From IMG/VR virus record IMGVR_UViG_3300046660_000488, positions 186,001 through 250,000 of that record: 64,000 nucleotides of DNA; one strand, given 5' to 3'. Of the stretch, positions 25,801 through 39,048 are shown in pieces. Every line of letters starts with the position of its first letter. The first letter of the stretch is position 1. A program made the translations under genes and the position numbers. The notes below the pieces were generated by a model. That model was not told the DNA's origin, made no database searches, and was given only the letters and a program-made list of their open reading frames with translations.

Positions 25801-27611
25801 AAAGCCGAACCCAGCGAGCCAGCAGGCGTGATCCACACCGGCGGCAGGTTGACCTGCACGACGAGGGAGTAGGCTTGGGCGACCGGAGCGTTGACGCCGT
25901 CGCTGGCGCTGATCGTGAAATTGTAGGTGGTCTCGCTTCCAACGTCCGGCGTGACGCCGCTGATGAGGCCCGTGGAGCCGTTCAGCGTGATACCGGCCGG
26001 AAGCATGCCCGCCGTGATCGAATAGGCCACAGACGTGGCGTTGGGGTCTTGGGCGACCAGTTGCGCGGAGAAATCCGACTTGCCGAGCACAGTGGCGATC
26101 AGGCCAGCGTTCGACACCCAGATCGGCGGGATGTTGTTGCGGACCACGAAGGAAAACGTCTGCGTCGTCTTCTGCTCACCGATGGCGGCTTCGACGTCGA
26201 AGCTGTAGTTGGTATCCGACGCAACCGTGCTCAGCACGCCGCCCAGCAGACCGGTGTTCGCGTCGAGGTTCAGACCAGCCGGGAGCGCGGCCAGAGCCGT
26301 GTAGGTGACCGAACGGTTGGCGCCGGTGCTGTCCGTGGCCTTCAGGGTCTTCGAGACCGGATAGCCTTCGATGCCTTCGCCCAGATCAGCAGCGGTGTTC
26401 CACACCGGCGGCATGTTCTTCAGGGTGGTGATTTGCAGGCTGCGCGACGCGGCGTTGACGCCGTCGTTGGCGACGACCGTGAAGTTGTAGTTGGTGTTGG
26501 TGACGACATCCGGAAGCGTGCCCGAGATCGTGCCCGTCTCTTCCATGGTCAGGTCGCCCGGCAGGGTCGAGCCATTGGCCAGAGTATAAGTGACGAGGTC
26601 GCCGTTCGGATCGGTCGCGTGGGCGTTGAGGACGATGAATTCGCCGCCGAAGCCTTGACCGATCTTGCCAGACGAAATCCAGACCGGTGGGACGTTCTTC
26701 TCAACCTTGATGCGGAAGGTGCGGACCGTGCTCTTGAAACCGTCCGTGGCGGCCACGTTGAACGGGTACATCATGTCGCGGCCAACCGCCGGAGCCACAC
26801 CGGCGACCACGCCCGTGTTGCCGTCGAGGACGATACCGTCCGGCAGAGTTCCGGCGTCGAGGCGGAAGGTAACCGTCTGGCCAGCCGTCGCGTCGGTGGC
26901 TTGCAGTTGGACGTTGAAGGGCTTGCCTTCGACGACCTTGCCGCCGAGATCGCCGCTCAGATAGTCCGGCGTGATCCAGACCGGCGGGGCATTGTACTTG
27001 GTCTGGAAATTGAACGCGCGGTCGGCGGTCATCGTGCCGTCAGAGGCGCGGACGGTGAAGAAGAAATTGGTGTCATCGGTGACCGACGACAGACGGCCGC
27101 TGAGCAGGCCGGTGTTGGATTGCAGCGTCAGACCGCGCGGCAGGGAGCCCGTCAGGACCGAATAGCTGACCGGTGTGCCTTCCGGATCAACAGCTTCGAG
27201 TTGGACGCTGGCGAGGGTGTTGTCGAATTGCGAACCGAGCGACCCTGCGGCGGTCACCCAGACCGGGGCAGAGTTGACAGTGACGTTGGCGGAGAACGTG
27301 CGGGTGGCGGTCTCGCCGTTCGACGTGGCCGACAGTGTGAATTCGTACGAGCCCGCGATGTTGTTCAGCGTGCCGTAGATCGTGCCGGTGTTGATGTCCA
27401 GAGCCGTGCCGGGCGGGAGCGTGCCGCTCTCCAGCGAGAACACCGGCGCCGGACCATTGATGACGCGAACGCGATTGGTCTCTGCAATGTCCGAGCTACC
27501 GACGAACGAGCCGATGTCCCCTTCCGGCGGCGACAGCCAGTCGATCAGGGTCTTATTGGTTGCTGCTTGGTTCAGCCAAGTAAGTTTCAGGCCGTCGTAC
27601 TTAATACCCAT
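16836..27611 (-). CDS. Giant virion fibre/adhesin-like protein (3591 aa): ~15 tandem putative Ig (He_PIG/cadherin-like) repeats then ~7 LamG/concanavalin-like domains alternating with Ig repeats
   Basis: Repeats begin P-[VI]-W-x-T and contain 'ATDPEG..VTYS...G.LP.GL.L...G.ISGT'; LamG units run from 'D.Y..NV' through 'FT[IV]E.W' and 'W.H.A' to 'GY[IM]D[ED].R.T.G.ARY'. TAAATA upstream. Confidence 0.85.
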   Translation of the reverse strand: MGIKYDGLKLTWLNQAATNKTLIDWLSPPEGDIGSFVGSSDIAETNRVRVINGPAPVFSLESGTLPPGTALDINTGTIYGTLNNIAGSYEFTLSATSNGETATRTFSANVTVNSAPVWVTAAGSLGSQFDNTLASVQLEAVDPEGTPVSYSVLTGSLPRGLTLQSNTGLLSGRLSSVTDDTNFFFTVRASDGTMTADRAFNFQTKYNAPPVWITPDYLSGDLGGKVVEGKPFNVQLQATDATAGQTVTFRLDAGTLPDGIVLDGNTGVVAGVAPAVGRDMMYPFNVAATDGFKSTVRTFRIKVEKNVPPVWISSGKIGQGFGGEFIVLNAHATDPNGDLVTYTLANGSTLPGDLTMEETGTISGTLPDVVTNTNYNFTVVANDGVNAASRSLQITTLKNMPPVWNTAADLGEGIEGYPVSKTLKATDSTGANRSVTYTALAALPAGLNLDANTGLLGGVLSTVASDTNYSFDVEAAIGEQKTTQTFSFVVRNNIPPIWVSNAGLIATVLGKSDFSAQLVAQDPNATSVAYSITAGMLPAGITLNGSTGLISGVTPDVGSETTYNFTISASDGVNAPVAQAYSLVVQVNLPPVWITPAGSLGSAFETMPFSATIAANDPEGRPIAFYNAPGNILPMGLSLNQATGVINGSLPKVNNDVTTSFMLYADDNSNNQSSRTARTFTITTKFNSPPVWITNPSLGTQIEGLAYSRQLEASGVGNGPMIYTLESGVLPVGITMSKSGLLSGSFPAVTDAEDYAFTIKAFNGIKDATQDFTMRVEKNVAPVWVTASGSLGSFSTNEAVNINLSATDANGQSLTYSVVSGALPTGLSLINGSIGGRITTLSQEGQSYNFTIRASDGVLSADRPFSITLLADSTPTWITPAGSLGNFIKNKSVSVALSAADSEGQVMTYSIISGALPTGMGMTPAGVITGTTPNVTTTTSYNFTVRASDGIHYADRAFTMSVATDAPPVWTTPAGSLGTALSGYTAGFSVVATDPEGLPLTYTMVSGTLPPNMSVSGNYISTGGAFLPLTYTDTTYTFTFEVTDGNNVVQRTFSITVLKNLDPVFTTPAGSFGTYIEGTVVSNTVVVTDPENQQVTLSITSGSLPSGLSMDPFTGLISGTIGTVSTDTDYNFTVTASDSKRTSSRSFSYTVMFSAAPSFTTAAGSLGSALEQTAQSYTVNAVANGHPIEYSVRTGEFLPSGMTLNANTGVISGTLPAVTNDTTYPFYITAKDKLTNKTTDRAFSISVQLNVAPVWTTAAGNVLTDLAGTAFSKTFVATDPNGTPVTLSLISGAFPDGATFDAANGVLSGNLPTVSTDTVYTFTLGAFDGAIRSDRTFTITSQKDTAPVWTTNAGALPSGLENTGYSTTLLAVDPQGKTVTYSLNASTLPGTLALRSNGLVVGALPNVASNTAYNFTVDASDGTLSTARTFSLTVLDNRPPVWVTPAGTLGNVTEGVNGTFTLSATDPENGALVYSLVNSTTVPSGMTLYGSNGVIRGAPTTVGADTTTPFDVRVTDPVGNFADRSFAITVLRDTTFSDNYSNAVAYLGHYDDTVDQYWANVVSFIPADADLLNYGSSNQLTGSGHSRDTTNIKFGTASMAIALNSTTNLAFPNGAINTQAFTIEFWFKRSRIGLYEGLAWLGSNGATANSLLFDFSAGNVFNIKYGVGIPMTMGTVADTNWHHVVIQGDATGFTGYLDGTRSFTTQVPGYNLTEASGFLFGAGGVANNAYVGNFDDFRVTVGQARYSGATITVPTAAMQMPLQDYYAIPTQQLGGSVVPSTSFSKFGNAALAVANTVALSLPSTSGNYAFNSISTSAPFTVEGWFYQTSSQTANSTVLLKKNADASVNFAMRVRGSDRKMEGVVYYTGTGGSTVTAASANAVSLNEWHHIAIVGDSASNLTFYMDGVRVATSQYTRQNLTTPLLINGDATATHRGLNGYIDEVRLTNAARYSGASYDVPVSSPSLPKWTTLSGVVSSGNEKSAVSNVALVSTDPYATGHLTYALASYSTLPGDLSLLSNGVITGSYPTYTATAVSFDAIATDGNGNKTPARTFSVAPTLTTANALSLSWRLNNANTGVAYTTLTPEVGTVAPITYAAGPLMAVAPGYPGETCAYFNAAVAKFTSGTTSIRALVGDFTAETWVYATATPGTTTVRILINVGTTQERFNIVYAPGTNTWNWSYNGSTGQIGATTLNVWTHLAVVKIGTTMRMYLNGTLTATVTVVTPASTYFDSQNLTLGAYDNGNTGSVNNLMNTYVRSLNIWSIAKYTENFTPVWESFFQPYFTAATTANVEADAAIALATPATTFGNATVSYTVSNGYTAAANGLVTGPGPADGVYANVAVSATDQYGRTTPSRTYRLLGTTGDVYYSNVASLIHAEDLTDNGYVFPTYTLGSQAVISTEQAKFGSSSIKFNGAVDSIVRTGLMPTLGTNDYTFELFFYSSGLTTHSNGGYASCLLNLTNGNTSNNIGNHLGIFIGNTSPAMDYLTIQTRYATDTGPLVPGAQFGAPIPAVSLNAWHHFALVRKGDSLTAFIDGNMVATLQLPAGFVQPMIAGQTFMQYGSININNFQGAFNGYMDEMRVTPGVARYVEPFTPPTAAFGNFQDNGPSFTTKTQSLGAFYKTANVAIPVTAVANGAAVNTYTLMSGTLPGNTVLTNAGTVSGVLADVSTNTDNTFVIKATDTSGRSKTKSYTYTTLAEFDQNFSNVAFLYHADAQANVVTYATDTTGRNTIYLGNAKISAASSKFGNTALFFNTNDWNSGNLARTQANSVVIGSSNFTIESWVNLSNVSTYDIFLSTLMAYVAPDVTNNQTHSWNVGIQGSNATTPTNIKFRAYNTSGGVIADYYAAMGANFTLNTWNHVAVTREGTVINFFVNGVKLTPVANTAIGSAALQAQATSTLFLGGTSINGFQYNMYGYMDEPRITVGTARYSATFTPPSAPFPSMGNPVPTWTNNAMTYRTSANASVLLPLSAPPATTYTVTAGALPAGLSISNSGLLFGATSIANSTANSTITAVATGFTRDATLSITNEADPFIANTLSVLRANPTLTDSMGLITWAGSGNGGYSTAKSTPLNTGALSVTGAQNVLTNYIRSSGLPAAFNLGTKDWTIEFKSNITALVATADGWLSEIISIGTNSGGNAGKAIQFYYYGGTIGAGNANTITAVEFRGQNADASGYVFQLNGVFGLPITTGTWHHIALQRRGTTFTLWLNGVQVGSTTAAGAIPFNVNSDAITLGLYPYTTDSTHGYQFNGYIDDFRMTVGQARYTATFTPPDAIGGLAAPTFTTAANATVAAGYANTVLNTAAVVATSPSQATPVYSLVSGTLPSGVTFNSNGTLTGSFANTGVASATSNIVVRASVGDYTADQTFAVEYVGSTPVDPYYANTMVLLPLTGAQGSAPVELKSGRTITTASTITTVRGKWGSSSLTSLVNQFMYIDNTDGALAASGDFTMEGWFYKTAYGTGGFDNFFGAYNAGTANDTIFYTTATGVITLYVGGGSVALGGVTFPKDQWVHMAWTRASGVSRFYMNGTQFATNSSFTGTLAAGTKRLTVGGYETQAAGNSHIGQINDFRYTKGVARYTANFTPPNKPFPRG

Positions 27612-27680: not shown

Positions 27681-27919
27681 GTTGCGACGTGCCGTATAAT
27701 AACGGCTTCCACTGTTCGAAATTTGCTTTTGTAATTCGGGTTAAATTTCAATCACTACTGTATCAAATACTGAGATTTTACGTCTATATTGACGTAGTTT
27801 ACATGCAATACTTGCGGATAACAGCACAGATCAACGTTGGGTACTCATTTGGTAAACGAGACGGGTTGACATGCTCGCGCCGCTGTGCTTGAACGGTGCT
27901 CGAACCGATTGGAAAGACG

Positions 27920-28252
27920 ATGCGAAAGCCAATTCCCTCCGAAGTCATCGGCGCCTGCCAGATGGAATTCGAAAAACGCGCAGCGTTCCGTTTCAAGGAC
28001 GGCGCGGTCTTGGCCGCTCTGATCGAGACCGATAGGTATCTGAAGAAAAAACTGATGACCTACGCCGGACCGGAGCCCCTGAGCGGCCTCGACACCTACG
28101 AGCGCCACTACCTGTTCGACGTGTTCGCCGCCAAATACATCGACGGGCTGGACCACTGGCCGATCAACAACGATGGTGAGGACAAAAGCATCGCGTTTCT
28201 GGCGGGCATCGAGAAACTGTCCAAGGAAGGCGTCATCGACGTCATCCCATGA
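27920..28252 (+). CDS. Hypothetical protein
   Basis: In-frame ATG at 27920 after GGAAAG; TTGACA at 27866; ATGA coupling to next gene. Confidence 0.65.
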   Translation: MRKPIPSEVIGACQMEFEKRAAFRFKDGAVLAALIETDRYLKKKLMTYAGPEPLSGLDTYERHYLFDVFAAKYIDGLDHWPINNDGEDKSIAFLAGIEKLSKEGVIDVIP

Positions 28253-29013
28253 ACCTGCCGCAGAAATTCGAAACGCGGCTGGTCTACCAGATCATGGCCT
28301 CCGACCTCGTGCCCGAGATTGTTGAGGCGACGAAACTGCCGATCAAGGACTTCACGCCGATCTACGACACGGTCTTGTACGGACAGCGCGCCATCACGTT
28401 CATGAACAATGGGGCGCCCTTCGTCTTCGAGATCGCCGAGAATGCGGACGGGTCACTGGATGTGATCCGAGAGCGACCGGTCTTCCCGTGGGAATACAAT
28501 CTGATGTCTCCCGCCTTCAATCGCTGGGTGGCGCGAAACACCGTTGAGTCTGGGGGCGCGTTCTGGCGGATCGTTCAAGGCTACATCCACCCGTCCGACA
28601 TCGAATTCAACCTGTACCACTACCGGACCGGCACACGGATCGACGATGACGACGGCCCTACGGAAAAGCTCGTGCGCTTCCGGCCGGTCGCCGCCCCGGA
28701 TTGCCCGCTGCATCTGCATTTTTCGCTGGTCGCTCCCCAGATCGTCAATCACACGGTCGTCACCACCTTCAACCTGACCGAGATCAAGGATTACGCCCCG
28801 GCGAACGAACCGAACGTCCGTGGAGTCGCCATCGGGTTGGGTCCGTCGAGGTCTCGATGCCTGAAAGCATTCACCGATTCTGGCTACATCCTGAACGAAA
28901 CCATCCCGCCGCCGACGTTCAACGACAGCGACCGGTTCAAAACGATCTACAATAGCAAGGGAAAAGCGCTCGTGCGGCGCCGCCTCACGGAACCTCAGAT
29001 TTCAGGCTCGTAG
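28249..29013 (+). CDS. Hypothetical protein (254 aa)
   Basis: Long ORF with phage codon bias. Confidence 0.7.
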   Translation: MNLPQKFETRLVYQIMASDLVPEIVEATKLPIKDFTPIYDTVLYGQRAITFMNNGAPFVFEIAENADGSLDVIRERPVFPWEYNLMSPAFNRWVARNTVESGGAFWRIVQGYIHPSDIEFNLYHYRTGTRIDDDDGPTEKLVRFRPVAAPDCPLHLHFSLVAPQIVNHTVVTTFNLTEIKDYAPANEPNVRGVAIGLGPSRSRCLKAFTDSGYILNETIPPPTFNDSDRFKTIYNSKGKALVRRRLTEPQISGS

Positions 29014-29693
29014 GTGTGAAAATTGCGGCGGATGCCCTGCACCGTCGCAGTTTCGGTTTTCACGTACTTGAAGCGCGTGTTGGGCATGATCAGGAATTCA
29101 AGTTCCTCGGGGTCGTGCGAGTACGGGGCCACGTAGAAACCGTTCTTGAACCCGGCAGGCAGGATGAAATGGAGGACGTGGTCCTCCGGCATCATGTCGG
29201 CCAGCAGGGCGTTGCGGGTGGCTTCCCACTCGTCGGTCTCATCGTCCCGGCGATAGTTGGTGGTCTTGACCGCCACCTTGATGCTCAGCGACGAACTGGT
29301 GAAAGCCGGGGTTGAGAGGACGCCGTCTTCCGTGATCTCGCGGGGATCGAACTCGCCCGTGCCGCTGTAGGTGTGGTGGACCTCGTTGAGCGCCACCCGG
29401 TTGTTCAGCATCAGCAGGGAATAGTACTGGGCGCGCATCGCGCCGTCCAACTGGCTCGGATCGCCACCAGCCTCGATCAACGCGGCGTTGATATCGGACC
29501 CGGCTGTGTAGAGCTTGGTCATGTGAAGCACAGACGCGGTGGTGATCTGGTATTGGGCCGCAAGCTGAGCATGCTCCGCCTCGAAACCCTTGAAATCGAG
29601 GTTGATGTTGGTCTCGATGCGACGCGAGTCATCGTTGCCTACCTCGCTCTGGTAGGAGTCCACGATGTCAATGGCGGCCCGAATCTGCAACAT
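28995..29693 (-). CDS. Putative ADP-ribosyltransferase (VIP2/Alt-like R-S-E fold)
   Basis: 'HTYSGT', 'PAFTSSSLS' (STS-like), 'VLHFILPAG..G.Y', 'EELEFLIMPNTRFK' (ExE). Start set at the ATG 7 nt after TAAATA. Confidence 0.75.
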   Translation of the reverse strand: MLQIRAAIDIVDSYQSEVGNDDSRRIETNINLDFKGFEAEHAQLAAQYQITTASVLHMTKLYTAGSDINAALIEAGGDPSQLDGAMRAQYYSLLMLNNRVALNEVHHTYSGTGEFDPREITEDGVLSTPAFTSSSLSIKVAVKTTNYRRDDETDEWEATRNALLADMMPEDHVLHFILPAGFKNGFYVAPYSHDPEELEFLIMPNTRFKYVKTETATVQGIRRNFHTYEPEI

Positions 29694-29700
29694 GCCCAAG

Positions 29701-29706
29701 TATTTA
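29701..29706 (-). promoter_or_regulatory. T4-like late promoter core TAAATA
   Basis: 7 nt before the ART ATG. Confidence 0.55.
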
Positions 29707-29773
29707 TGGCCGCAGGTGTTGACGGCCGGATGAGCTACCCGTACAAGTTGGGAAACCAAATGGGACGCGAGCG

Positions 29774-30250
29774 ATGAACCGCCGTCATTTTCTGGGCCTG
29801 CTCACAGCGGGCGCCGCAGCTTCAGCCGCAGACGTCGCATCGGCGACCGCCTTTGACCCGCGCTACGGGAAGCTTCTCCGCGCGCAGCGGGACATCATCC
29901 ACGCGAACAATCGCTGGAAGATCAGCCGGAATGTTGAGGATCGCCACACGGTCCGGCTTCTCTTCAATGACATGATGTTCTACGCCTTCGAGGCGTTCCC
30001 GAACATGGAAATGACCGGCGACGTCGCGGCGAAAATGCGTCCAGTCTGGGAAAACAAAATCAACACACTGAGTGAGGACGATCTTCGACAGTACGAAGAC
30101 CCTATCCTCGTGACCGCGCTGGCCCGCGCCGCCATTTCGCAGTGGTTCCTGCCGATAGACAACCTCGAAAAATTCGACGGCAGGCCCAACGCTCTGAGCG
30201 TCTTTGCTACTCGCTACCGTCCGTTCGTTCTGGCCGACGAGAACACCTAG
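29774..30250 (+). CDS. Hypothetical protein with twin-arginine (Tat)-like signal peptide
   Basis: N-terminus MNRRHFLGLLTAGAAASAADVASA: RRxFL motif, hydrophobic/Ala core, ASA cleavage-like site. Confidence 0.65.
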   Translation: MNRRHFLGLLTAGAAASAADVASATAFDPRYGKLLRAQRDIIHANNRWKISRNVEDRHTVRLLFNDMMFYAFEAFPNMEMTGDVAAKMRPVWENKINTLSEDDLRQYEDPILVTALARAAISQWFLPIDNLEKFDGRPNALSVFATRYRPFVLADENT

Positions 30251-30483
30251 TCGAGGAACGGTTCTTCGCCGTCCGCGATGCGGAGCCGGTCTTCCTCCAG
30301 CATCCCGTCTTCCGAGACCTGATAGTCGAGGTTCCCCTTCGGGACCTCGCCTTTCTGGAGCTTTCCTTCAACGTACCAGCGGCAGAACAGCCGGTCGTAC
30401 TGATCGACGAAGTCGATCTGGACCTCACCGGCCATGCCGGAATTCTTGGTCCACACCCATACCTGACCGGCGGCGAAGATCAT
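30247..30483 (-). CDS. Small hypothetical protein
   Basis: ATG after GGAGG RBS; last of a run of small minus-strand genes. Confidence 0.55.
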   Translation of the reverse strand: MIFAAGQVWVWTKNSGMAGEVQIDFVDQYDRLFCRWYVEGKLQKGEVPKGNLDYQVSEDGMLEEDRLRIADGEEPFLD

Positions 30484-30494
30484 CGGTCCTCCGA

Positions 30495-30749
30495 TCACTG
30501 ATAGGTGCAGACGACGCCGGGCGAGCCGACCGTGACGACTTCGTAGCGGCCGTTCCGATAGACCTTGCAGCCCTCGAATTCGGCGACGAGCGTGTAGCCC
30601 TTGGCGCGGTTGGCGCGGTAGATGGCCATTTGCTCGTTCTCGCGTTCAGCCATCAGGAACATCCCGTAGGCGGCGAGGCCGACGATGGCGGCGGCCACGT
30701 ACACGCGCTTCTTCAGACGCGACTTCGGTTGCGGGGTGGCGTCGGTCAA
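30495..30749 (-). CDS. Small membrane-anchored hypothetical protein
   Basis: Single TM 'VYVAAAIVGLAAYGMFLM' after a basic N-terminus. Confidence 0.6.
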   Translation of the reverse strand: MTDATPQPKSRLKKRVYVAAAIVGLAAYGMFLMAERENEQMAIYRANRAKGYTLVAEFEGCKVYRNGRYEVVTVGSPGVVCTYQ

Positions 30750-31045
30750 TTCGTTGCTCCTATGAAATTGCGGCGGATATAATCTGCGACCGGGCCGGGC
30801 ATGGCGACCAGAACGGCGCGGTCTTCAAGTTGATAGTCGCAGCCGGACAGGCCGCAGTCGCATTCGAAATGCTCTTGGGCGCTGACCTCGATCACCGGGA
30901 CCAGATGGCTCTTGCCCTGTGGATCGTAGACCTTGACCGGCTTTTCCATGCCGAAGGCCTTCCACCACCAGACGCCGCCGTCGATCACCAACTTGCGAAA
31001 GCCGGGGCGGGTCAGGGGTAGGCGGCGCGTACGCTTGCGTTCCAT
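30746..31045 (-). CDS. Small hypothetical protein (99 aa)
   Basis: GAGG RBS; 'CDCGLSGC' cysteine cluster. Confidence 0.6.
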   Translation of the reverse strand: MERKRTRRLPLTRPGFRKLVIDGGVWWWKAFGMEKPVKVYDPQGKSHLVPVIEVSAQEHFECDCGLSGCDYQLEDRAVLVAMPGPVADYIRRNFIGATN

Positions 31046-31113
31046 GGTGTCCTCAGTGTGCGGCGATGACGCAGATCGCGATGATCGCGCCGAAAATAGC
31101 GGGCCAGATTATA

Positions 31114-31662
31114 TCACGCACTGGGCGCGCTCGTCTTGCCAAGGGCCATGACCGGCATCAGGGCCACGACGTCGTACTCGAATTCGGCCGTGACCATCTT
31201 CAGGAGGGCTTCGCCTTCCTCGTAGGTCTCGACGCCAGCGGCGGCTTCCTGCACTGCTTTCTTGGCGGCTTCCAAGGCCGCGTCGGCGGCGGCCTGAGCC
31301 TTGGCCAGCATGTGGCGCGCCTTGGCCAAGCTGATGGTGGCGCTGTCAACCCAGCGGAACCGAACGTGCGGCAGGTCACGAGCGTCCATCTTGTGGGCGT
31401 CCCAGATGGCCGAAATGTCGAGGGCGGCGAAATCGCCGTTCTCCATCGACAGGTTGGTCACGTGGCTGGTGAACTGTTCGTGGCGCTCGTTGACGTCGCG
31501 CGCCCAGTCCAGAGCCGCATCCAGCCCGTCGAATTCGGTGAACTGAACCTTGGTCGAACCCTTGTCCGCGCCGGAATGGCAGAGCGTGATGATCGTGACT
31601 TCGGCCAAGGGGTTCTCCTCGTGAAAGTTGTATCGAAACCCTACATACCACATCCCCGGCAT
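31114..31662 (-). CDS. Hypothetical protein with C-terminal Ala-rich helix
   Basis: 182-aa ORF with phage codon bias. Confidence 0.65.
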   Translation of the reverse strand: MPGMWYVGFRYNFHEENPLAEVTIITLCHSGADKGSTKVQFTEFDGLDAALDWARDVNERHEQFTSHVTNLSMENGDFAALDISAIWDAHKMDARDLPHVRFRWVDSATISLAKARHMLAKAQAAADAALEAAKKAVQEAAAGVETYEEGEALLKMVTAEFEYDVVALMPVMALGKTSAPSA

Positions 31663-31755
31663 AATGCAAGCCCTATTCTTTGAACTGTGCTTGTTATGGA
31701 AGCACAGATGAAACGGGGACTTGCGCTAAATCGACTCTGCGGGAAATGACTCAAT

Positions 31756-31785
31756 TTGACACAACCTTAGATTCGATTCTATACA
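31756..31785 (+). promoter_or_regulatory. Sigma70-like promoter TTGACA-N18-TATACA
   Basis: Near-consensus -35/-10 pair with no protein gene for ~800 nt downstream. Confidence 0.55.
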
Positions 31786-31789
31786 GGGA

Positions 31790-32530
31790 CTCATATTCGT
31801 TCAGAGCATTATCATCTTCAGCGGCCATGCTCGTCGCGACAACTGGAAAAGGTGGGGCTCACACAGGGTGACCCACGCAGGGGCTGAACGGCCAAGGGAC
31901 GGACGCTCCACGCGGACTGAGCATTAAAGCGCGCGATGAAGGCAACGGCTTCCCACTGTAGACCCTACGGTCTACGACAAAGGCACTGAACAATGATGAG
32001 AGTCGTGTCTTGACCATTTGACACCTCTCTGCACATGGCGGTTCTTTCGACGCCGACCATGTGTGCTTGGCCCTCACGGGCCATAACCGTCTGACATATA
32101 ACGTTCACCAGCTACGCAAGGCAGTCCAATGAAAAGGCGTTCGACGCACATTGAGACAACATGCCCCAAAGGAGCACTCTTCAGGTGGAACAAGTCGGGA
32201 TTGGGTTGCTACAAGCAGGTCTAGGGAGACCGCCTGCTGCCGCTATAGACGCGGCTAAGTGACTACGAAAAGGCTATACGAACTCAGGGCGTTATGCTTC
32301 ACTCCTCCTCTCCGGTACACGTTTCAGTCCAGCACTTCAGACGCATTTTTGTGTCTGGATGCTTGTGACTGGCGTGGACACCGGAGAGGGGGAGAAAGAG
32401 ACCTTAAATCTAGGGCATATGGGATTTGAAAGTTTAAGGCCAAAAGGCCAGATTGAAAGCCCAAGCAGTGGGATGAACGGAGCGCAAGCGGAGTGATTCC
32501 CCTGCTTGCTCAGGGGGCAAATGCCCCCTG
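31790..32530 (+). ncRNA. Candidate large structured non-coding RNA (~740 nt), family unknown
   Basis: No credible ORF; at least 8 hairpins including a 93-nt irregular stem 32302-32394 whose G-U wobbles favour the + strand; ends in hairpin CAGGGGGC-AAAT-GCCCCCTG. Boundaries approximate. Confidence 0.6.
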
Positions 32531-32580
32531 AAGCCGAAAATCTGGTTGACGAAATCGGAAATTGTGCTACACAGTTCCTC

Positions 32581-32913
32581 ATGAAGCAGAACCCCTACGA
32601 CGTAGACACCAGCGACATCGTCATCGGCTATGCCGGTTACGAGGCGGGGTTCTATTGCTTTCGGGTCAAGCTCGCCGAAGCCGCAGGCATGGCGACCATC
32701 AAGCTTCAGATGGAAATCTCGTCGTGGGCCTTTGACGCCGTGAACGGCCGCTGGCATATGGGAAACGACTTTCCCTACAGCGATCATCCGCCCGTGAAAC
32801 TGACCAACCCCGGCAAGAACGACACCTTCATCATTTTCGAGCGCATGGCTGACGCCGTGGCGTTCGAGAACAAGTTTGAGGTCACCGGCATCACGCCGAA
32901 GATGCTGGTTTAA
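32581..32913 (+). CDS. Hypothetical protein
   Basis: ATG 32581 chosen because the upstream in-frame part carries a TTGACG promoter-like element and the RNA hairpin. Confidence 0.6.
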   Translation: MKQNPYDVDTSDIVIGYAGYEAGFYCFRVKLAEAAGMATIKLQMEISSWAFDAVNGRWHMGNDFPYSDHPPVKLTNPGKNDTFIIFERMADAVAFENKFEVTGITPKMLV

Positions 32914-32914
32914 G

Positions 32915-33448
32915 ATGACCGACATCATCGAGATCGACCGGGCCACTTTCGCCGACATGCGCGATTTCGCGCGGCTGGTCATGTGCTTTGGGAAGAAATC
33001 GAGGACCATCAACTTGATGGGCAACGCTCTCCAGTTGAGCCACGCGATCCTGTCGAAAGATTCCATGCGGATCACGATAGCCAACACCACCAAATACTGG
33101 TCGGCCGAGCTTTATCTGACCGTTCCGTACAATCTTCGCGTGCATCTCAAGCCCCCGAACATCAAGGACCATCGGGGTAAGATGCACCAAACGGTCTCAC
33201 TCGGCCTGAGCGGCGTCACTCGTCTGCCTCGATACTACGACGAATTGCACATCCTCAAGCACAACTGCGGCGAGGGGAGAAACACCCGAAACCAGCATGA
33301 CCCTGAGTATTTCGCATTCTGGCTTCTGAGGTTCGGTATTAGGGCCGTGGACAGCAAGTCTGGCTTCCGGGGAAGCAAAGATTCCTTCACCAGCGATTTG
33401 ATCGCCATGAAGATGACCTATCACGACCAGTATTCGGAACCGGGCTGA
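32915..33448 (+). CDS. Hypothetical protein, C-terminal motif family C
   Basis: Ends '...GSKDSFTSDLIAMKMTYH...'. Confidence 0.65.
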   Translation: MTDIIEIDRATFADMRDFARLVMCFGKKSRTINLMGNALQLSHAILSKDSMRITIANTTKYWSAELYLTVPYNLRVHLKPPNIKDHRGKMHQTVSLGLSGVTRLPRYYDELHILKHNCGEGRNTRNQHDPEYFAFWLLRFGIRAVDSKSGFRGSKDSFTSDLIAMKMTYHDQYSEPG

Positions 33449-34314
33449 TGACGATCAACAACCAGCACGAACCAACCTGCCATTTTACGGGCGAGAAACC
33501 GGTCCCCATGCCGGAGGACACGAGGGTTCGCGCTGAAGCGCTGGCCTTCATTCTGGCCGCCCGGTGGGACAGCACGCCTCGGATCATGGTCGCCTACATC
33601 CACGAACTGTGGACGGCCCACCATTACGGCCCTGTAAACGACTATACGGACGCCTCCCGCGCCGCTCGCAAGGACATGGCGGCCATCAGCCAAGATTTCG
33701 CCCAGATGTCCCGCGCCCGGCGCGCGGTGGTGGCCGAAATGCGGAAGTCCGAGTTGATCAAGGGCAAGTCGGTTCTCCGTGTCAACGAGCATGAGCACGA
33801 GAAACTGATGAATTTGGTGCGCGACTGCCGCAAGGTCGCCGTTCGGGATTTCAAGTACACCCCCATAGTCAAAGAGACGTACGAAGGCATGGGGTTCCGG
33901 TTCGACATCATCGCCAGCAATAATGGCAACCGCGTTTTCCAGCAGAGAAAGCAGCATTTCGAGTTCGTCTTCAGCTACAAGGACAACCCGGATCGCAACT
34001 CGACGCTGACATTCACGGTGGTCCCGCCCGACATCAAGGTGACGATTGTCGATCAGGCCAGCCACAATGACTGGATCGATTTCGACTATTTCCGTGACAA
34101 GGACTTCCACGATCACCCCGGCGCCAGAGAAGCCGAGATTCTGTTCAACAACCAAGTCTCCGGCACGCCTGTCGAGTACACCGCCCGCAACAACGCCGCC
34201 CGAACCCTGTGGCTGATGCGCTGGGGCGTGCCCGTTCGCGAGACCGTCACCTTCGACGGCAACCGGGAACGGTTCGAGCACGACATGGTCGCCCTGAAAC
34301 TGGCGGTCGGATGA
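33448..34314 (+). CDS. Hypothetical protein, C-terminal motif family C
   Basis: TGATG coupling; ends 'GNRERFEHDMVALKLAVG'. Confidence 0.7.
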   Translation: MTINNQHEPTCHFTGEKPVPMPEDTRVRAEALAFILAARWDSTPRIMVAYIHELWTAHHYGPVNDYTDASRAARKDMAAISQDFAQMSRARRAVVAEMRKSELIKGKSVLRVNEHEHEKLMNLVRDCRKVAVRDFKYTPIVKETYEGMGFRFDIIASNNGNRVFQQRKQHFEFVFSYKDNPDRNSTLTFTVVPPDIKVTIVDQASHNDWIDFDYFRDKDFHDHPGAREAEILFNNQVSGTPVEYTARNNAARTLWLMRWGVPVRETVTFDGNRERFEHDMVALKLAVG

Positions 34315-35144
34315 TGAGCCGAGAAGAACACCGATACTGGATGGGCGAACTCACTGTCGAGATCGACGAGAGCCTTCGCAACCGCATCGAGAGTGTCGGA
34401 TTCCTCTGGGCCTGCCAGAACGACGTCAACCCGGCCGCCGTCAACCGTCTCATCTATGACGAATACTACCGCTACCATTTCGGGAAGATGGAGAAGGCGA
34501 CGAAGGCTTGGAACCAGTTTCAGAACCAGTTCAAGAATTCGTCGCAGGCCACACACCGCCGTAGGCTCATCCGACACCTGATGCGCGAGAATGGCTGGAT
34601 CGGAGCGCCGGAAGATGCCCCGCCGGTCGAGGCCCACCGTGAGATCGTGCGGCAAATCCGCAAAATCATCAGCAAGGTGCTCTCCGACGAATTCAGCTTC
34701 CCCTATGTTGGAAACGGATTCCGGGTGGCACTGGACTGCATATGCCGTATGGGGATGACGGAGACCGTGGTGGTGATTGACCGGGAATCGTCGGACGAGG
34801 TGAACCGAATCGCGTTCGATCTACTGACGCCCGAAATGGCGATTGAACTGGTTGACCATGTCGATCAGCGCTATCTGAACAGCACCAAGGGTTGGATGCA
34901 CCGTGAGCAGAAGATCACGAATTTCCACGCTCTGCCGTCGTGGCAGGCGACGCGGGAAGTGGTCGAGAAATCGCAGTCTATCAAGCTGACCGGCTGTCGT
35001 ATCGGATTGGCTCTGAACGAAAACCTCACCGATTATTTCTGGCTGAACGCATTCGGCGACGTGGACCGGGCGTCTCTGAAGGTCGAGGGTGATCTTGACG
35101 CCCTGAAACGTGACCTGATGGTCTTAAAGATGGCCCAGTCCTGA
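34311..35144 (+). CDS. Hypothetical protein, C-terminal motif family C
   Basis: ATGA coupling; ends 'GDLDALKRDLMVLKMAQS'. Confidence 0.7.
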   Translation: MMSREEHRYWMGELTVEIDESLRNRIESVGFLWACQNDVNPAAVNRLIYDEYYRYHFGKMEKATKAWNQFQNQFKNSSQATHRRRLIRHLMRENGWIGAPEDAPPVEAHREIVRQIRKIISKVLSDEFSFPYVGNGFRVALDCICRMGMTETVVVIDRESSDEVNRIAFDLLTPEMAIELVDHVDQRYLNSTKGWMHREQKITNFHALPSWQATREVVEKSQSIKLTGCRIGLALNENLTDYFWLNAFGDVDRASLKVEGDLDALKRDLMVLKMAQS

Positions 35145-35212
35145 CGGGTGGTCGGTTGACTTTCAACCGGCGATCAGGCCTATAGAGATTTGGTTTCCCA
35201 AAAGGTATATCC

Positions 35213-38071
35213 ATGAGCCTCTACAAGGACACGGTCTTCCTCCCGACCACGTCTTTCACCATGCAGCGCCCGACCATCGCGGACGAGGCGGCTATGGTGC
35301 GCTCGTGGGGCCACCTCTACCAGAATTATGGGCCGCGCTCCGTCGATCTGACGGATGACGATCCGTTCGTCCTGCACGACGGCCCGCCATACGCCAACGG
35401 CGACATCCACATCGGCCACGCGATGAACAAAGTCCTCAAGGACTTCATCGTCCGGTCGCAGCGTGGCATGAACAAGTCCGTGGACTATCGTCCGGGCTGG
35501 GACTGCCATGGCCTGCCCATCGAGACGCAGGTCGAGAAAATCCTGCTGGAAGAAGGCGTGCAGAAGAAGCGCCTTGGCCCGGTGGCCTTCCGCGACCGCT
35601 GCCGCGAGTACGCGCAAGGCCAGATGGACAAACAGCGCGACCAATTCAAAGCGCTGGGCGTCATGGCCGACTACAAGGCCCGCTATTCCACGATGGACTT
35701 CGCCTCCGAGGCGGCCATCGCCGACCGCTTGCACCTGCTGCTGGTCGCCGGGCTGCTCTATCGCGGCAAGAAGCCGATCCTGTGGAGCACCATCGAGGAA
35801 ACGGCCTTGGCTGAAGCCGAGGTCGAGCACAAGCCGATCAAGGTCACCAGCGCCTATGTCGCTTTCCGCATCTACGCCGAAGGCAAGGACATGCGCGACC
35901 CTTCGGCCGAGTATGTGATCGCGCCGATCTGGACCACCACGCCGTGGACCATCCCGGCCAACCGCGCCATCGCGTTCAACCCCGCCCTCGAATATCGCCT
36001 GTACCGTGTCCTGCATGCGGCTGGAACCGTCCTGAACCACGGCGAACAACTCGTGCTGGCCAAGAGCTTGGCTCCGAAGGTTCTGGCCGAGCTTGGCGTG
36101 ACCGAATGGGAAGAGCTTGAGCGCTACGAGTTGGCGGGCCGCGAGTACTACAGCCCGCTGGCCAATGGTGGCTCCAGCTTCGTCTACAACAACTCCATGC
36201 CGTTCATCGTTGGCAACCACGTCACCGACGCCATGGGCACGGGTCTCGTTCACACGGCTCCGGACCACGGTCCGGATGACTATGCCTGCTGGATGAAGTA
36301 CTGCGAAGACGGCGCCGGTAGCGAATTCTACCCGATCTTGAACGCGGACGGCACGTTCAGCGAGTTGATCCCCGGCATCGGCGGGATGAACGTCCTGAAC
36401 CAGACGCCCAAGGGTGAGTACATCTTCGAGTACACCAATGCGGTGATGATCGAAACGCTTGGGTCCGCCGTTCTCGGCCGGGCCAAGGTCGAGATCAGCT
36501 ATCCGCATTCGTGGCGCTCCAAGGCGCCGCTGGTCTACCGCGTCACGCCGCAGTGGTTCATGTCCGTGGACGACGACCTGCGTGGCATCTGCGACAAGGC
36601 CATCGACGAGGTTCTGTTCCCGCCGGGCCAAGAGCCCAGTAAGGAACGTCTGAAGGCGTCGATGGCGTCGCGCCCGGACTGGCTGATCAGCCGCCAGCGC
36701 TGGTGGGGCACGCCTCTGGCGCTGTTCTTCCACAAGGACACGAACGAACCGCTGCGCGACGAGATCGTCAACGCCCGGATCGTCGAAACCTTCCGCGAGG
36801 AAGGCGGCAATTCGTGGTGGGAGCGGCCCAAGACCTATTGGCTCGAATTGGCTGAGGTCAATCCGGACGATTACGTGCAGTGCATGGACGTGCTGGACGT
36901 GTGGTTCGACTCTGCCTCCAGTCTGGCGCTCATCGAGTTTGGTCAGGCTGACCTCTACCTCGAAGGTACGGACCAGCATCGTGGGTGGTTCGGCTCGTCG
37001 CTGCTCCAGCAGTGCGCGATCCTCGACACCTACGTCGAGAATTACTACGCCCCGTTCGCCCAACTGGTGACGCACGGTTTCGTGCTCGACGCCAAGGGCG
37101 AGAAGATGTCCAAGTCCAAGGGCAACGTCATCCCGCCTGAGAAGGTTGTTGCCGACTATGGGACCGATGTCCTGCGGTTGTGGGTCGCCACCAGCGACTA
37201 CACGCAGGACATCCGCGCCGGGGACAAAATCTTCGACAGCGCGGCCGACATCTACAAGAAACTGCGGTTGACGATTCGCTACCTGCTGGGCGCCCTGCAA
37301 GGGTGGTCCGACGACGAGTGGACGCGGCCATCCAGCCCGCTGGAGAATTTCGTCCTGTCACGGATGAACGATCTGAACGAGGACGTGGCCAAGGCTTACG
37401 CCGAGTACCGGTTCAACGACGTGGTGCGGATGGTGATGAACTATTCGTCCAACACCCTGTCGTCGTTCTTCTTCGACATCCGCAAGGACACGCTCTACTG
37501 CGACCCGTTGATCTCGTCGGTCAAGCGTCGGGAATACCGGACGGCTCTGCTGCAATTGCTGCAAGCGATGACCGCATGGCTTCAACCCATCGTCCCGTTC
37601 ATGATGGATGAGGCGTTCGTGGCGCTCGGCTGGAGCCGGGACCAGCGCATCATCACGCGCGGCTACCCCATCGATTTCGCCGACGACGAGAAGAAGGCGT
37701 TGGAGGACCGTTTCGGCTGCGTGTTCGAGGTGTTGGATTTCGTCAACGACCAGTTGGAAGCCCTTCGCCGCGACAAGACGATCAAGACCGGGCTGGACCT
37801 GTTCATCCAAGTCCACATGCCCGAGCGCCACTTCAAGGCGTTCGAAGGTCTGGACGCGGCCGAAATCCTGCGGGTCAGCCAAGTCGGGCTGTTCGTGAAC
37901 CCGAACCCAAAGGACAACGAGTTCAAATTCGCGCACTACCCCGCCAAGGGTGAGCGGTGCGAGCGCTCGCGCCGGTTCTTCTACGACGTCGGCTCCGACC
38001 CAAACCACCCGACCCTGTCGGCGCGCGATGCGCTGGCGGTCGAGGAATACAAATTCATCAACCAGCCATGA
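35213..38071 (+). CDS. ileS: Isoleucyl-tRNA synthetase
   Basis: 'LHDGPPYANGDIHIGH' (HIGH), 'PGWDCHGLPIE', 'WTTTPWTIPAN' editing domain, 'GTGLVHTAPDHG', 'DWLISRQRWWG', 'YLEGTDQHRGWF', 'KMSKSKGN'. Confidence 0.97.
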   Translation: MSLYKDTVFLPTTSFTMQRPTIADEAAMVRSWGHLYQNYGPRSVDLTDDDPFVLHDGPPYANGDIHIGHAMNKVLKDFIVRSQRGMNKSVDYRPGWDCHGLPIETQVEKILLEEGVQKKRLGPVAFRDRCREYAQGQMDKQRDQFKALGVMADYKARYSTMDFASEAAIADRLHLLLVAGLLYRGKKPILWSTIEETALAEAEVEHKPIKVTSAYVAFRIYAEGKDMRDPSAEYVIAPIWTTTPWTIPANRAIAFNPALEYRLYRVLHAAGTVLNHGEQLVLAKSLAPKVLAELGVTEWEELERYELAGREYYSPLANGGSSFVYNNSMPFIVGNHVTDAMGTGLVHTAPDHGPDDYACWMKYCEDGAGSEFYPILNADGTFSELIPGIGGMNVLNQTPKGEYIFEYTNAVMIETLGSAVLGRAKVEISYPHSWRSKAPLVYRVTPQWFMSVDDDLRGICDKAIDEVLFPPGQEPSKERLKASMASRPDWLISRQRWWGTPLALFFHKDTNEPLRDEIVNARIVETFREEGGNSWWERPKTYWLELAEVNPDDYVQCMDVLDVWFDSASSLALIEFGQADLYLEGTDQHRGWFGSSLLQQCAILDTYVENYYAPFAQLVTHGFVLDAKGEKMSKSKGNVIPPEKVVADYGTDVLRLWVATSDYTQDIRAGDKIFDSAADIYKKLRLTIRYLLGALQGWSDDEWTRPSSPLENFVLSRMNDLNEDVAKAYAEYRFNDVVRMVMNYSSNTLSSFFFDIRKDTLYCDPLISSVKRREYRTALLQLLQAMTAWLQPIVPFMMDEAFVALGWSRDQRIITRGYPIDFADDEKKALEDRFGCVFEVLDFVNDQLEALRRDKTIKTGLDLFIQVHMPERHFKAFEGLDAAEILRVSQVGLFVNPNPKDNEFKFAHYPAKGERCERSRRFFYDVGSDPNHPTLSARDALAVEEYKFINQP

Positions 38072-38544
38072 CCCGCGAACACACCTACGAGGACGAGCAC
38101 GCCCGGTCTCTCGAAATGACCCTTGAGCCGGGCTATTACTGGGCCACCAACTCCCGAGGGGAGCGCGATCTTGTCGCGTTTGTCCCAGAGAACCCCGGTG
38201 GCCGTTTCAGGAACGCTCGTTCGGAGTGGGGGACCGATCTGTCCTTTGCGGACATCGTAGGGCCTATCAAGCCTCCGGAAACGGACGGCAAAGGCCCCGG
38301 CGTCGTCACGCCCATCGGCTCATACTATTGGGCGCGGGAATACGTCAGCGGCAAGGTGATGGTGGTCTTCGTGGACTGGCGCCGCGACATTCGTCCACTG
38401 GGCGGCGTAACGCGCGGATCGCAATACAGCCACAAACTGATCAGCAAGGCGATTACAGAGGATCGTCTTCCGAGTGATCGTGATCCGAATGGTCATGACC
38501 CGAGTGGTCCTGATGAGCCTCCAGTTCCGCCCGCTGTTCCTTGA
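38068..38544 (+). CDS. Hypothetical protein with duplicated 'GxYWA' module
   Basis: ATGA coupling with ileS; 'PGYYWAT' and 'GSYYWAR' repeated; Pro-rich tail. Confidence 0.6.
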   Translation: MTREHTYEDEHARSLEMTLEPGYYWATNSRGERDLVAFVPENPGGRFRNARSEWGTDLSFADIVGPIKPPETDGKGPGVVTPIGSYYWAREYVSGKVMVVFVDWRRDIRPLGGVTRGSQYSHKLISKAITEDRLPSDRDPNGHDPSGPDEPPVPPAVP

Positions 38545-39037: not shown

Positions 39038-39042
39038 CCTCG

Positions 39043-39048
39043 TATTTA
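39043..39048 (-). promoter_or_regulatory. T4-like late promoter core TAAATA
   Basis: 5 nt before the ATG at 39037. Confidence 0.55.

Follow-up and report, generated by a model that had tools for sequence, protein, structure and literature searches.

Very few RNA classes above 600 nt with extensive conserved structure are known in bacteria and phages, which are the ribosomal RNAs, RNase P, group I and II introns, OLE, GOLLD, ROOL and a handful more, and each of them has either revealed new biochemistry or remains a prominent open problem. GOLLD is a large (over 650 nt), elaborately folded RNA of unknown function, which is encoded in phages or prophages, often next to tRNA islands, and whose 5′ part is less conserved than the rest (PMC12286853). 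ROOL RNA (rumen-originating, ornate, large) is of similar size, with 659 nt for the ROOL env-120 studied by cryo-EM, is phage or prophage encoded and widely distributed, and has multiple predicted pseudoknots and no known protein partner (PMC12286853). For GOLLD and ROOL, homo-oligomeric RNA-only cages (14-mer or 8-mer) have been seen by cryo-EM. OLE RNA is a roughly 600-nt ornate bacterial RNA with many covarying helices, which acts as a scaffold and forms dimers (PMC12286853). The non-coding content of the largest phages is essentially unexplored, and a 2026 review of jumbo phage biology mentions non-coding RNAs only in passing. Here we describe a region in a 578-kb rhizosphere huge phage (IMGVR_UViG_3300046660_000488) that is best described as the gene for a new class of large ornate phage RNA of roughly 740 nt, although its transcription and function are inferred only.

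An ORF-free region and its homologs

The stretch of DNA analyzed here, referred to as the window, comprises 64,000 nucleotides of this genome. With a lenient ORF filter (at least 50 aa, GC3 at least 0.66), positions 31663-32505/32580 are the longest uncovered stretch of the window with 843-918 nt, against 438 nt for the next longest. A sequence-only reading had proposed that this gap holds a structured non-coding RNA of about 740 nt with its own sigma70-type promoter, which is either a divergent member of the GOLLD/ROOL kind or a new large phage RNA. Every promoter and helix element listed in that reading is present, and its main interpretation is supported. The region can be divided as follows.

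31756-31785, + strand: promoter, with -35 TTGACA (31756-31761), an 18-nt spacer ending in GATTC, and -10 TATACA (31780-31785)
31787-32530, + strand: the RNA gene (copy 1), about 740 nt, with the start inferred at about 31787-31793 in the invariant GGACUC and the end placed at the terminal hairpin
31804-31837, + strand: candidate 5′ H-type pseudoknot, with S1 31804-31809 pairing with 31827-31832, and S2 GCGG 31821-31824 (in the S1 loop) pairing with UCGC 31834-31837
31838-31956, + strand: 5′ variable domain with large insertions and deletions between members, structure not resolved
31958-31975, + strand: hairpin H_D (GUAGACC/GGUCUAC), followed by the conserved single strand ACAAAGGCACUGAAC
31998-32029, + strand: hairpin H_A with a conserved loop U.GA..AUUU
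32032-32063, + strand: hairpin H_B (GCACATGG/CCATGTGT enclosing GGCG/CGCC; 32031-32064 in the sequence-only reading)
32065-32082, + strand: invariant single strand GCUUG, then hairpin H_C (GGCCC-UCAC-GGGCC, 32069-32082)
32087-32204, + strand: closed middle domain, in which the long-range helix CCGUCUGAC (32087-32095) with GUCGGGAUUGG (32194-32204) encloses the stem 32103-32109/32184-32191 and the hairpin 32124-32157, capped by a GNRA-type loop in two members
32214-32238, + strand: sequence-invariant hairpin AGCAGG-UCUAGGGAGACCG-CCUGCU
32239-32255, + strand: hairpin H_E (GCCGC-UAUAGAC-GCGGC), with a loop beginning with the self-complementary UAUA in three of four members
32276-32295, + strand: hairpin H_G, presenting the conserved 9-nt loop AACUCAGGG (32281-32289)
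32302-32394, + strand: long rod-like hairpin H_L, 93 nt here, with a base reading C-rich/GGGGGAG
32388-32424, + strand: most conserved junction, GGGGGAGAAAGAGAC..UAAAUCUAGGG.CAUAUG
32438-32449, + strand: small hairpin GGCC-AAAA-GGCC, found in copy 1 only
32462-32508, + strand: 3′ hairpin H_3 with symmetric purine-rich internal loops (UGA/GAU, GGA/GGA) and a GNRA-type cap
32511-32530, + strand: terminal GC-rich hairpin H_T (CAGGGGGC-AAAU-GCCCCCUG) without a U tract, an inferred terminator or 3′-end protector
32546-32583, + strand: separate promoter-like site of the downstream 110-aa gene (TTGACG 32546-32551, 16-nt spacer, TACACA 32568-32573, ATG 32581), which is not part of the RNA and marks its boundary

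Three homologous sequences were found. Copy 2 is a paralog about 321 kb away in the same genome, which was first seen as a second contig at the same depth in the source run and lies at contig positions 538.7-539.4 kb on the opposite strand. L024 is an ortholog in a 56-kb IMG/VR contig (nhmmer E = 2e-79), and L035 is a distant ortholog in a 25-kb Logan contig (nhmmer E = 2e-14). Homology begins at the promoter and ends at the terminal hairpin, and the lengths from GGACUC to the hairpin end are 744, 678, 759, and 662 nt. The -35 reads TTGACA/TTGACA/TCGACA/TTGCGA and the -10 reads TATACA in all four members at a fixed 18-nt spacing, followed by GGACUC, whereas the spacer varies apart from GATTC. 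The promoter motif is unique in the window. A consensus scan did not report it only because it requires T at position 6 of the -10 hexamer, which is lacking here. That a sigma70-type holoenzyme uses this site is inferred.

BLASTN of the gap against 50,697 GenBank phage records gave no match, and exact-pattern scans of IMG/VR with conserved motifs returned only the source genome, L024 and chance hits; L034 is a chance match inside a 1640-aa ORF. A scan of the JGI metagenomes gave 13 chance matches and not even the source contig, and a scan of GTDB genomes gave three chance matches, so that no bacterial homolog was found, albeit by one exact motif only. The upstream 182-aa protein has no homolog at all. 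The 110-aa protein has 28 homologs, but of 16 loci examined only the window, L024 and L035 carry the RNA. Most related phages lack the RNA at the syntenic locus, so it is dispensable for the lineage. No paper describing these motifs or a large structured RNA of huge phages was found in the literature.

Conserved structure and absence of a coding signal

All four members fold far better than shuffled controls, with z-scores of -5.8, -5.3, -11.4, and -8.0. For copy 1 the value is -5.84 on the + strand and -5.30 on the - strand, and strand-blind energy therefore does not settle the strand. Since MAFFT alignments of the variable helices were out of register, covariance models were built from copy 1 with or without L024 and the other members were aligned to them; a reverse-strand self-hit of the palindromic hairpin in one alignment was removed before counting. 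In the central domain 96% of pair cells form pairs and 22 of 35 pairs carry changes on both sides, comprising five of seven pairs in H_D (96% paired), six of 10 in H_A, seven of 11 in H_B (100% paired), and four of seven in H_C. H_A was deleted from the model alignment for L035, which has a shorter hairpin there. In the middle domain 94.7% of cells pair and 18 of 43 pairs change on both sides, although the long-range helix itself is nearly invariant (two of nine pairs vary) and L035 fits it poorly. Taken together, 40 of 78 pairs in the two domains change on both sides, which none of 500 shuffles reaches, and slid controls pair only 30-43% and 32-44% of the cells, respectively. However, only four sequences are available and two of the alignments were fitted with models built from copy 1 alone, which leans the counts toward that structure, and with four related sequences the shuffle test is not a probability.

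H_E has three of five pairs changed on both sides and is 90% paired, against 10-30% when slid. In H_G the stems differ (AUACG/CGUUAU, UACG/CGUA, CUUAC/GUAAG, GCCGCU/GGUGGC) while the loop is conserved in three members, and by our own count 93% of cells pair with two of five pairs changed on both sides. The long hairpin H_L, which has about 77-92 nt in copy 2 and L024 and about 50 nt in L035, is 96.7% paired in its basal 15 bp, with seven of 15 pairs changed on both sides (0 of 500 shuffles), and 93% paired in its inner part with 15 of 25 changed. The fold pattern of H_3 is the same in copy 1, copy 2 and L035. A member's own two strands of H_3 pair 7/7 (5/7 in L035), whereas strands from different members pair 1-4/7. 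For H_T own strands pair 5/5 and mixed strands 2-5/5, because copy 1 and L035 share the basal five pairs; a hairpin lies at this position in all four members, and copy 2 and L024 have different sequences. Hairpin-plus-U terminators are not enriched anywhere in 27.7-47.6 kb of this genome. Support for the 5′ pseudoknot is modest: on a plain MAFFT alignment 92.5% of cells pair, against 30-62% when slid, and S1 has three pairs changed on both sides (GAGCAU/AUGCUC against GGGGU/ACCCC), but S2 never varies and is neither supported nor contradicted. A pairing of GGGG in the 5′ domain with CCCC in the middle domain (9 bp in L024) is not consistent in L035, and an 11-nt tetraloop receptor and a kink-turn in the 3′ region, considered by eye, are not conserved. 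The small hairpin at 32438-32449 is absent from copy 2 and is a lineage-specific insertion.

The 25 nt of the hairpin 32214-32238 are identical between the two paralogs, which are otherwise about 70% alike, and GACCGCCUGC is invariant in all four members. There is little covariation in this hairpin, so a sequence-specific role is inferred. In the junction at 32388-32424 the 16-mer AGGGGGAGAAAGAGAC is identical in three members, and GGGGGAGA and CAUAU are present in all four. This junction is largely unpaired in the folds, and a role as the functional core is inferred. GCUUG is invariant in all four members as well.

With respect to the strand, the two aligned domains contain 22 G-U cells against four A-C cells, and the long hairpin folds to -62.5 kcal/mol on the + strand and -51.7 on the - strand, with four G-U pairs on +, where the sequence-only reading had counted three. 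Its remark that a GTGA loop would fit the minus strand better was not confirmed, since that stretch is paired in the + strand fold. These data also bear on the idea that selection acts on DNA or on replication, in that the region is an origin, a packaging site or a cruciform cluster, or encodes a ColE1 RNA II-like primer transcript. The region is a divergent intergenic region with a strong promoter, both strands fold well, and the two copies lie about 321 kb apart on opposite strands. However, helices are kept through G-U pairs on the + strand only, GNRA-type loops appear on the + strand, there are no iterons, AT-rich tracts or repeats, no origin signature and no antisense partner, GC skew follows gene direction and does not switch at the locus, and most relatives lack the element, which makes this explanation very unlikely.

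It is even less likely that the gap encodes one or more small proteins with atypical codon usage. Mechanical ORFs of 31-81 aa exist on both strands, and one pair (56 and 53 aa) overlaps the same region in copies 1 and 2. However, this pair enters the conserved block in different frames and runs through the hairpin of unrelated sequence, and no ORF is shared by all four members. Mismatches fall evenly over the three codon positions (70/68/62 for copy 1 against L024), only eight of 36 indels are multiples of three, and no ORF of at least 50 aa with GC3 of at least 0.66 lies in the gap. In close relatives from three other metagenomes the RNA body differs by 0.7-3.5%, while the flanking genes and the upstream spacer differ by 4.4-11.7%. 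Copy 1 and L024 are 72.5% identical in the RNA, while the adjacent protein is 50% identical.

Genomic context and possible modes of action

In three of four members the RNA lies directly upstream of the 110-aa gene on the same strand, and this gene heads a block leading to IleRS. Since the terminal hairpin lacks a U tract, read-through is possible, and the element could be a cis-acting 5′ leader (a giant riboswitch, T-box-like or attenuator element). However, copy 2 keeps the whole structure, yet is followed by a convergent gene, shares no flanking protein with copy 1 and has no gene to regulate, so that the element is best regarded as a stand-alone RNA and not as a leader. In addition, a promoter-like site with the same layout (TTGAC[GT], 16-nt spacer, TA...., ATG 5-7 nt later), read by eye only, lies between the RNA and the ATG in copy 1, L024 and L035, thirteen related loci run the same operon without the RNA, and no riboswitch or T-box model matches. 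A leader function is therefore considered unlikely.

The genome carries an IleRS and a tRNA, and the size, the multi-domain fold with a long-range helix and the invariant junction strands resemble large ribozymes. A ribozyme or the RNA subunit of an RNP serving the phage's translation machinery, for example a very divergent RNase P-like or other tRNA-processing RNA, is nevertheless improbable. No RNase P, tmRNA or group I/II intron model scores at E up to 1-10 on any member, ARAGORN finds one tRNA-Val and no tmRNA in the window, and no P4-type motif was seen; the weak likeness of GGGGGAGAAAGAGAC to the P4 5′ strand has no matching 3′ partner (read by eye). Moreover, the RNA is absent from most related phages that carry the same aaRS block, and two diverged paralogs are unusual for such an enzyme. 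A remnant or RNA component of a mobile element (an ORF-less group I or II intron, a retron-like or transposon guide RNA) would go along with the patchy presence among related phages, the two copies at unrelated loci of one genome, and a size typical of ORF-less group II introns. However, no intron, HEARO or other mobile-RNA model matches, the element interrupts no gene and carries its own promoter, and no reverse transcriptase, transposase, recombinase or nuclease is shared between loci. The copies are about 30% diverged without terminal repeats, and on the tree of the neighboring protein a single origin is not excluded. This possibility is therefore regarded as remote.

Positions 31787-32530 on the + strand are most likely a stand-alone gene for a non-coding RNA, the founding member of a small, previously undescribed family carried by a lineage of soil and freshwater huge phages. 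As there is no transcript evidence (the runs that contain the sequence are DNA metagenomes), the start, the end and even expression itself are inferred. The transcript is inferred to start in the invariant GGACUC, to end at or be protected by the terminal GC hairpin, and to fold into a multi-domain body with a 5′ pseudoknot domain, three central hairpins, a middle domain closed by a long-range helix, one sequence-invariant hairpin, a long variable rod, and a 3′ hairpin rich in purine internal loops. It is further inferred to act in trans as a folded particle during infection, with its invariant or conserved single strands and loops (GCUUG, AACUCAGGG, GAGAAAGAGAC..UCUAGGG..CAUAU, GACCGCCUGC) serving as the contact surface for a partner, which would be a protein, another RNA, or further copies of itself. 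No partner, no catalytic motif and no linked protein gene was found, so the mechanism beyond a folded RNA acting in trans is a guess. The position beside a phage aaRS block, the patchy distribution and the duplication give concrete hypotheses about a role in infection. The most likely working mode is that of an architectural RNA of the GOLLD/ROOL kind, and we put a probability of about 0.8 on an independent trans-acting structured RNA, whereas self-assembly specifically is only a tentative idea. More speculatively, and doubtful at present, this could be a new class of self-organizing RNA from huge phages, either an RNA-only multimeric assembly like the GOLLD/ROOL cages, with the long variable rod and the self-complementary loops (UAUA, CAUAUG) acting as inter-subunit bridges, or a new large ribozyme or RNP core acting on the host or phage translation apparatus. 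The two diverged paralogs might then form mixed assemblies or serve two specificities.

Comparison with OLE, ROOL and GOLLD RNAs

A scan of the window against Rfam at gathering thresholds found only the tRNA, and permissive scans (E up to 10 or 1) of all four members gave only spurious microRNA-precursor hits to the long hairpin on both strands, with E from 0.15 to 2.2. The first alternative of the sequence-only reading, a divergent member of GOLLD or ROOL, therefore finds no support, whereas a new large phage RNA fits. OLE shares with the RNA described here the ornate structure with many covarying helices. However, OLE is chromosomal in extremophilic Firmicutes and works with the dedicated Oap proteins encoded nearby, whereas no conserved neighboring protein occurs here and there is no Rfam match. 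ROOL is similar in size and phage or prophage encoded, and its multiple predicted pseudoknots and missing protein partner have a parallel in the 5′ pseudoknot and long-range helix proposed here and in the lack of a linked protein. The Rfam ROOL model does not match, the helix order and the conserved motifs are different, and only four members are known, against the wide distribution of ROOL. No similarity to the Rfam GOLLD model is detectable in any of the four members either, and the hosts and genomes differ, which are here soil and freshwater huge phages of about 55-60% GC. The nearest tRNA is about 16 kb away in the window and 2.8 kb away in L035, and none was seen near copy 2 or L024. Similar to GOLLD, the RNA is a large (over 650 nt), elaborately folded phage-encoded RNA of unknown function, which is less conserved in its 5′ part than in the rest and is encoded as a stand-alone gene in genomes rich in translation genes.

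Genomic context of the element and its homologs

The stretch under study is located on IMGVR_UViG_3300046660_000488, a viral contig of 578,292 bp (window position plus 186,000 gives the contig position), on which both genes flanking the gap are found at 100% identity, and the only DNA run that contains it entirely is a rhizosphere metagenome. At the nucleotide level nothing similar exists among 50,697 GenBank phage records. Besides a tRNA-Val, the window contains the following features around the gap:

16836-27611 (-) and 42249-47846 (+), two giant proteins (3591 and 1865 aa) made of He_PIG Ig-like and Laminin_G_3 repeats
31114-31662 (-), a gene encoding a 182-aa protein
31663-32580, the gap without a credible ORF
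32546-32583, a promoter-like site of the downstream gene
32581-32913 (+), a gene encoding a 110-aa protein
35213-38071, a gene encoding an isoleucyl-tRNA synthetase (IleRS)

The two giant proteins have an unusual codon-position composition (GC1 about equal to GC2, about 0.52), and related phages carry similar giants next to the same gene block (our loci L039 and L044). The 182-aa protein has no homolog among 5.8 billion proteins other than itself and is an orphan beside the RNA. With a lenient ORF filter the gap is the longest uncovered stretch of the window, and all inverted repeats listed by the sequence-only reading are present. The region folds much better than dinucleotide shuffles on either strand, with z = -5.84 on the + strand and -5.30 on the - strand, which is expected for DNA palindromes and does not by itself name the strand. 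A consensus scan reported neither a promoter nor a terminator, but the promoter is missed only because its -10 hexamer TATACA lacks T at the sixth position. Moreover, within window 27700-47600 neither consensus sigma70 promoters (4 found against 6.1 expected) nor hairpin-plus-U terminators (17 against 17.6) are enriched over shuffles, so that their absence here carries little weight. The promoters seen by conservation use -10 hexamers of the form TA.ACA, and the transcription signals of this phage may be non-canonical.

Placing contigs of four metagenomes on the region showed that a second contig of the source run, at the same depth (175x against 179x), matched 32215-32289 imperfectly and skipped the long hairpin, and that three other metagenomes (soil and freshwater) contain close relatives of the locus. 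A motif taken from the loose end of this second contig retrieved a second copy of the element (copy 2, as opposed to copy 1 in the gap) from the same viral contig. It is located at 538.7-539.4 kb on the opposite strand, about 321 kb from copy 1, roughly across the 578-kb genome, and the flanks of the two copies share no protein. In the coordinates of the retrieved stretch, L005, its surroundings are:

L005 1545-2212 (-), copy 2, whose terminal hairpin overlaps the stop region of a convergent 74-aa gene
L005 2394-2921, an outer-membrane beta-barrel gene
L005 2944-3528, a dihydrofolate reductase (DHFR) gene

Of five family motifs scanned in IMG/VR, three found only the source genome, whereas the motif comprising promoter and start found a third member, L024, in a 56-kb contig (nhmmer E = 2e-79). 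There it is located directly upstream of a homolog of the 110-aa gene, which is 50% identical in protein. The 110-aa protein family has no Pfam domain, harbors an invariant MGNxFPYxDxP motif, appears confined to huge-phage-like contigs and is usually encoded a few genes upstream of a phage IleRS. A profile search with this family gave 28 proteins, and inspection of their contigs revealed a fourth and much more divergent member, L035 (nhmmer E = 2e-14), again upstream of the 110-aa gene. The L035 contig carries two further features:

L035 6413-6484, a tRNA 2.8 kb upstream of its RNA copy
L035 7576-8955, a PAS/HWE histidine kinase-response regulator fusion, which is an unusual gene for a phage

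Thirteen other related loci have the same gene block but no RNA, either by nhmmer or by covariance model. On a tree of the 110-aa protein the three RNA-bearing loci fall outside a well-supported clade that contains 10 of the 11 RNA-less loci, and therefore one gain or one loss is not excluded. A single scan of metagenomes and a single scan of bacterial genomes gave only chance matches.

Conserved elements and selection on structure

Conservation starts at the promoter. The -35 hexamer reads TTGACA, TTGACA, TCGACA and TTGCGA and is followed by an 18-nt spacer that varies except for a terminal GATTC, then by TATACA in all four members, and then by (A/G)GGACUC. This pattern of fixed hexamers and a drifting spacer of fixed length is what a working sigma70-type promoter leaves behind. 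Conservation ends at a GC-rich hairpin, the sequence of which differs in copy 2 and L024 and is close to copy 1 in L035. From GGACUC to this hairpin the four RNAs measure 744, 678, 759 and 662 nt. Between these ends the same elements follow in the same order:

a 5' hairpin whose loop can pair with the strand just downstream (a candidate pseudoknot)
a variable 5' domain
three hairpins separated by invariant single strands (ACAAAGGCA, GCUUG)
a domain closed by a long-range helix
a hairpin whose sequence is almost invariant (GACCGCCUGC)
two small hairpins, one of which presents the loop AACUCAGGG
a long rod-like hairpin of 50-93 nt whose sequence is different in every member
the most conserved junction (GGGGGAGAAAGAGAC..UCUAGGG..CAUAU)
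a 3' hairpin with symmetric purine-rich internal loops

Folded on its own, each of the four sequences beats its shuffles, with z = -5.8, -5.3, -11.4 and -8.0. Since MAFFT put the variable helices out of register, we built covariance models from copy 1, with L024 added for the first model, and aligned the other members to them. For the third region (32236-32404), which comprises the long hairpin and hairpin H_E, a reverse-strand self-hit was removed before counting.

Table. Pairing and changes on both sides of pairs in the model-fitted alignments (region in the window; cells paired; pairs changed on both sides; shuffles reaching this; slid controls).
Central domain, 31957-32095; 96.0%; 22 of 35; 0 of 500; 30-43% paired, 1-4 pairs
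Middle domain and invariant hairpin, 32082-32240; 94.7%; 18 of 43; 0 of 500; 32-44% paired
Long hairpin, basal 15 bp; 96.7%; 7 of 15; 0 of 500; 57-62% paired
Long hairpin, inner part; 93%; 15 of 25; 0 of 500; 25-47% paired
Hairpin H_E; 90%; 3 of 5; 18 of 500; 10-30% paired

For the 3' hairpin the two strands of one member pair 7/7 (5/7 in L035), whereas strands taken from different members pair only 1-4/7. The terminal hairpin gives 5/5 for own strands and 2-5/5 for mixed strands, because copy 1 and L035 share its basal pairs. The candidate 5' pseudoknot has modest support, as three pairs in stem 1 change on both sides and stem 2 never varies. Furthermore, there may be a long-range pairing between a GGGG run in the 5' domain and the conserved GCCCCAAA of the middle domain (window 31838-31900 with 32160-32170; L024 about 3095-3105 with about 2790-2800 (-)), which comprises 9 bp (GGGGUUUAG/CUAAACCCC) in L024 and 5 bp in copies 1 and 2, but is not seen in L035. 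It has to be considered that there are only four sequences, that two of the models came from one sequence so that the alignments lean towards its structure, and that the shuffle test does not account for relatedness. Even so, the size of the effect, the slid controls and the independent single-sequence folds all point the same way.

Selection might also act on DNA, for example on a cruciform or an origin. However, the two aligned domains contain 22 G-U cells against 4 A-C cells, and a DNA cruciform or an origin would not favor G-U over A-C. The long hairpin is 11 kcal/mol more stable on the + strand, with four G-U pairs, capping loops of the GNRA type (GCAA, GCGA) appear on the + strand, and the promoter points the same way. 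Moreover, no repeats, iterons or skew switch mark the locus. With respect to the strength of selection, contig pieces within the RNA in the close relatives from three other metagenomes differ from the window by 0.7-3.5%, while pieces on the flanking genes and on the spacer upstream of the promoter differ by 4.4-11.7%. Copy 1 and L024 are 72.5% identical in the RNA, although the adjacent protein is only 50% identical.

Coding potential, gene organization and mode of action

A protein-coding function of the gap is contradicted by the comparison of the members. Mismatches fall evenly on the three codon positions, most indels are not multiples of three, and no ORF is shared by all four members. 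The one ORF pair that overlaps in copies 1 and 2 enters the conserved block in different frames and runs through the unrelated hairpin. A further possibility is that the RNA is a cis-regulatory leader of the 110-aa gene. However, copy 2 keeps the full architecture but has a convergent gene downstream. In the other three members a promoter-like site (TTGAC[GT], 16-nt spacer, TA....) is located between the terminal hairpin and the ATG of the 110-aa gene:

window 32546-32583
L024 about 2384-2420 (-)
L035 about 9970-10003

The ATG follows only 5-7 nt after the -10 and is not preceded by a Shine-Dalgarno sequence, which suggests a leaderless mRNA. Related phages run the same operon without the RNA. 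A cis-regulatory leader is therefore unlikely.

The element is thus conserved, structure-constrained, non-coding and stand-alone on the + strand, whereas it is inferred that it is transcribed from its own promoter, ends at the terminal hairpin and acts in trans as a folded particle. The parts that never vary are mostly single strands and loops, together with one hairpin that is conserved in sequence and not just in pairing, and these are the likely contact surface for a partner. The long rod changes sequence and length freely, as a spacer or a bridging arm would. Interestingly, two conserved loop motifs are self-complementary (UAUA; CAUAUG or AUAU), which would allow copies to pair with each other, as happens in the assemblies of the GOLLD and ROOL RNAs, but this is a lead and not a finding. 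We assign a probability of about 0.8 to an independent trans-acting structured RNA, whereas self-assembly specifically remains doubtful. The remainder is shared among a protein-bound scaffold, a ribozyme or RNP acting on translation components, and the rival explanations. The sequence-only reading, which had proposed a highly structured non-coding RNA with its own sigma70-type promoter, was correct in identifying a real feature. It is a new family of large structured RNA from huge phages with four members so far, the expression of which is inferred.

Comparison with known RNAs

Apart from the tRNA, no Rfam 15 family reaches its threshold in the window. Permissive scans of all four members (E up to 1 or 10) return only chance matches of microRNA precursors to the long hairpin, and ARAGORN finds no tmRNA. 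Therefore, membership in GOLLD, ROOL, OLE, HEARO, RNase P, tmRNA or the intron families is not supported. A literature search revealed no description of such an RNA in huge or jumbo phages and no paper containing the motifs of the family. In kind, the closest known RNAs are GOLLD and ROOL, which are both large, ornate, phage-encoded RNAs of unknown function and were both recently shown to form RNA-only cages (PMC12286853). The resemblance covers size, phage origin, stand-alone gene organization, a more variable 5' part and the lack of a linked protein, but it does not extend to sequence or to helix order.
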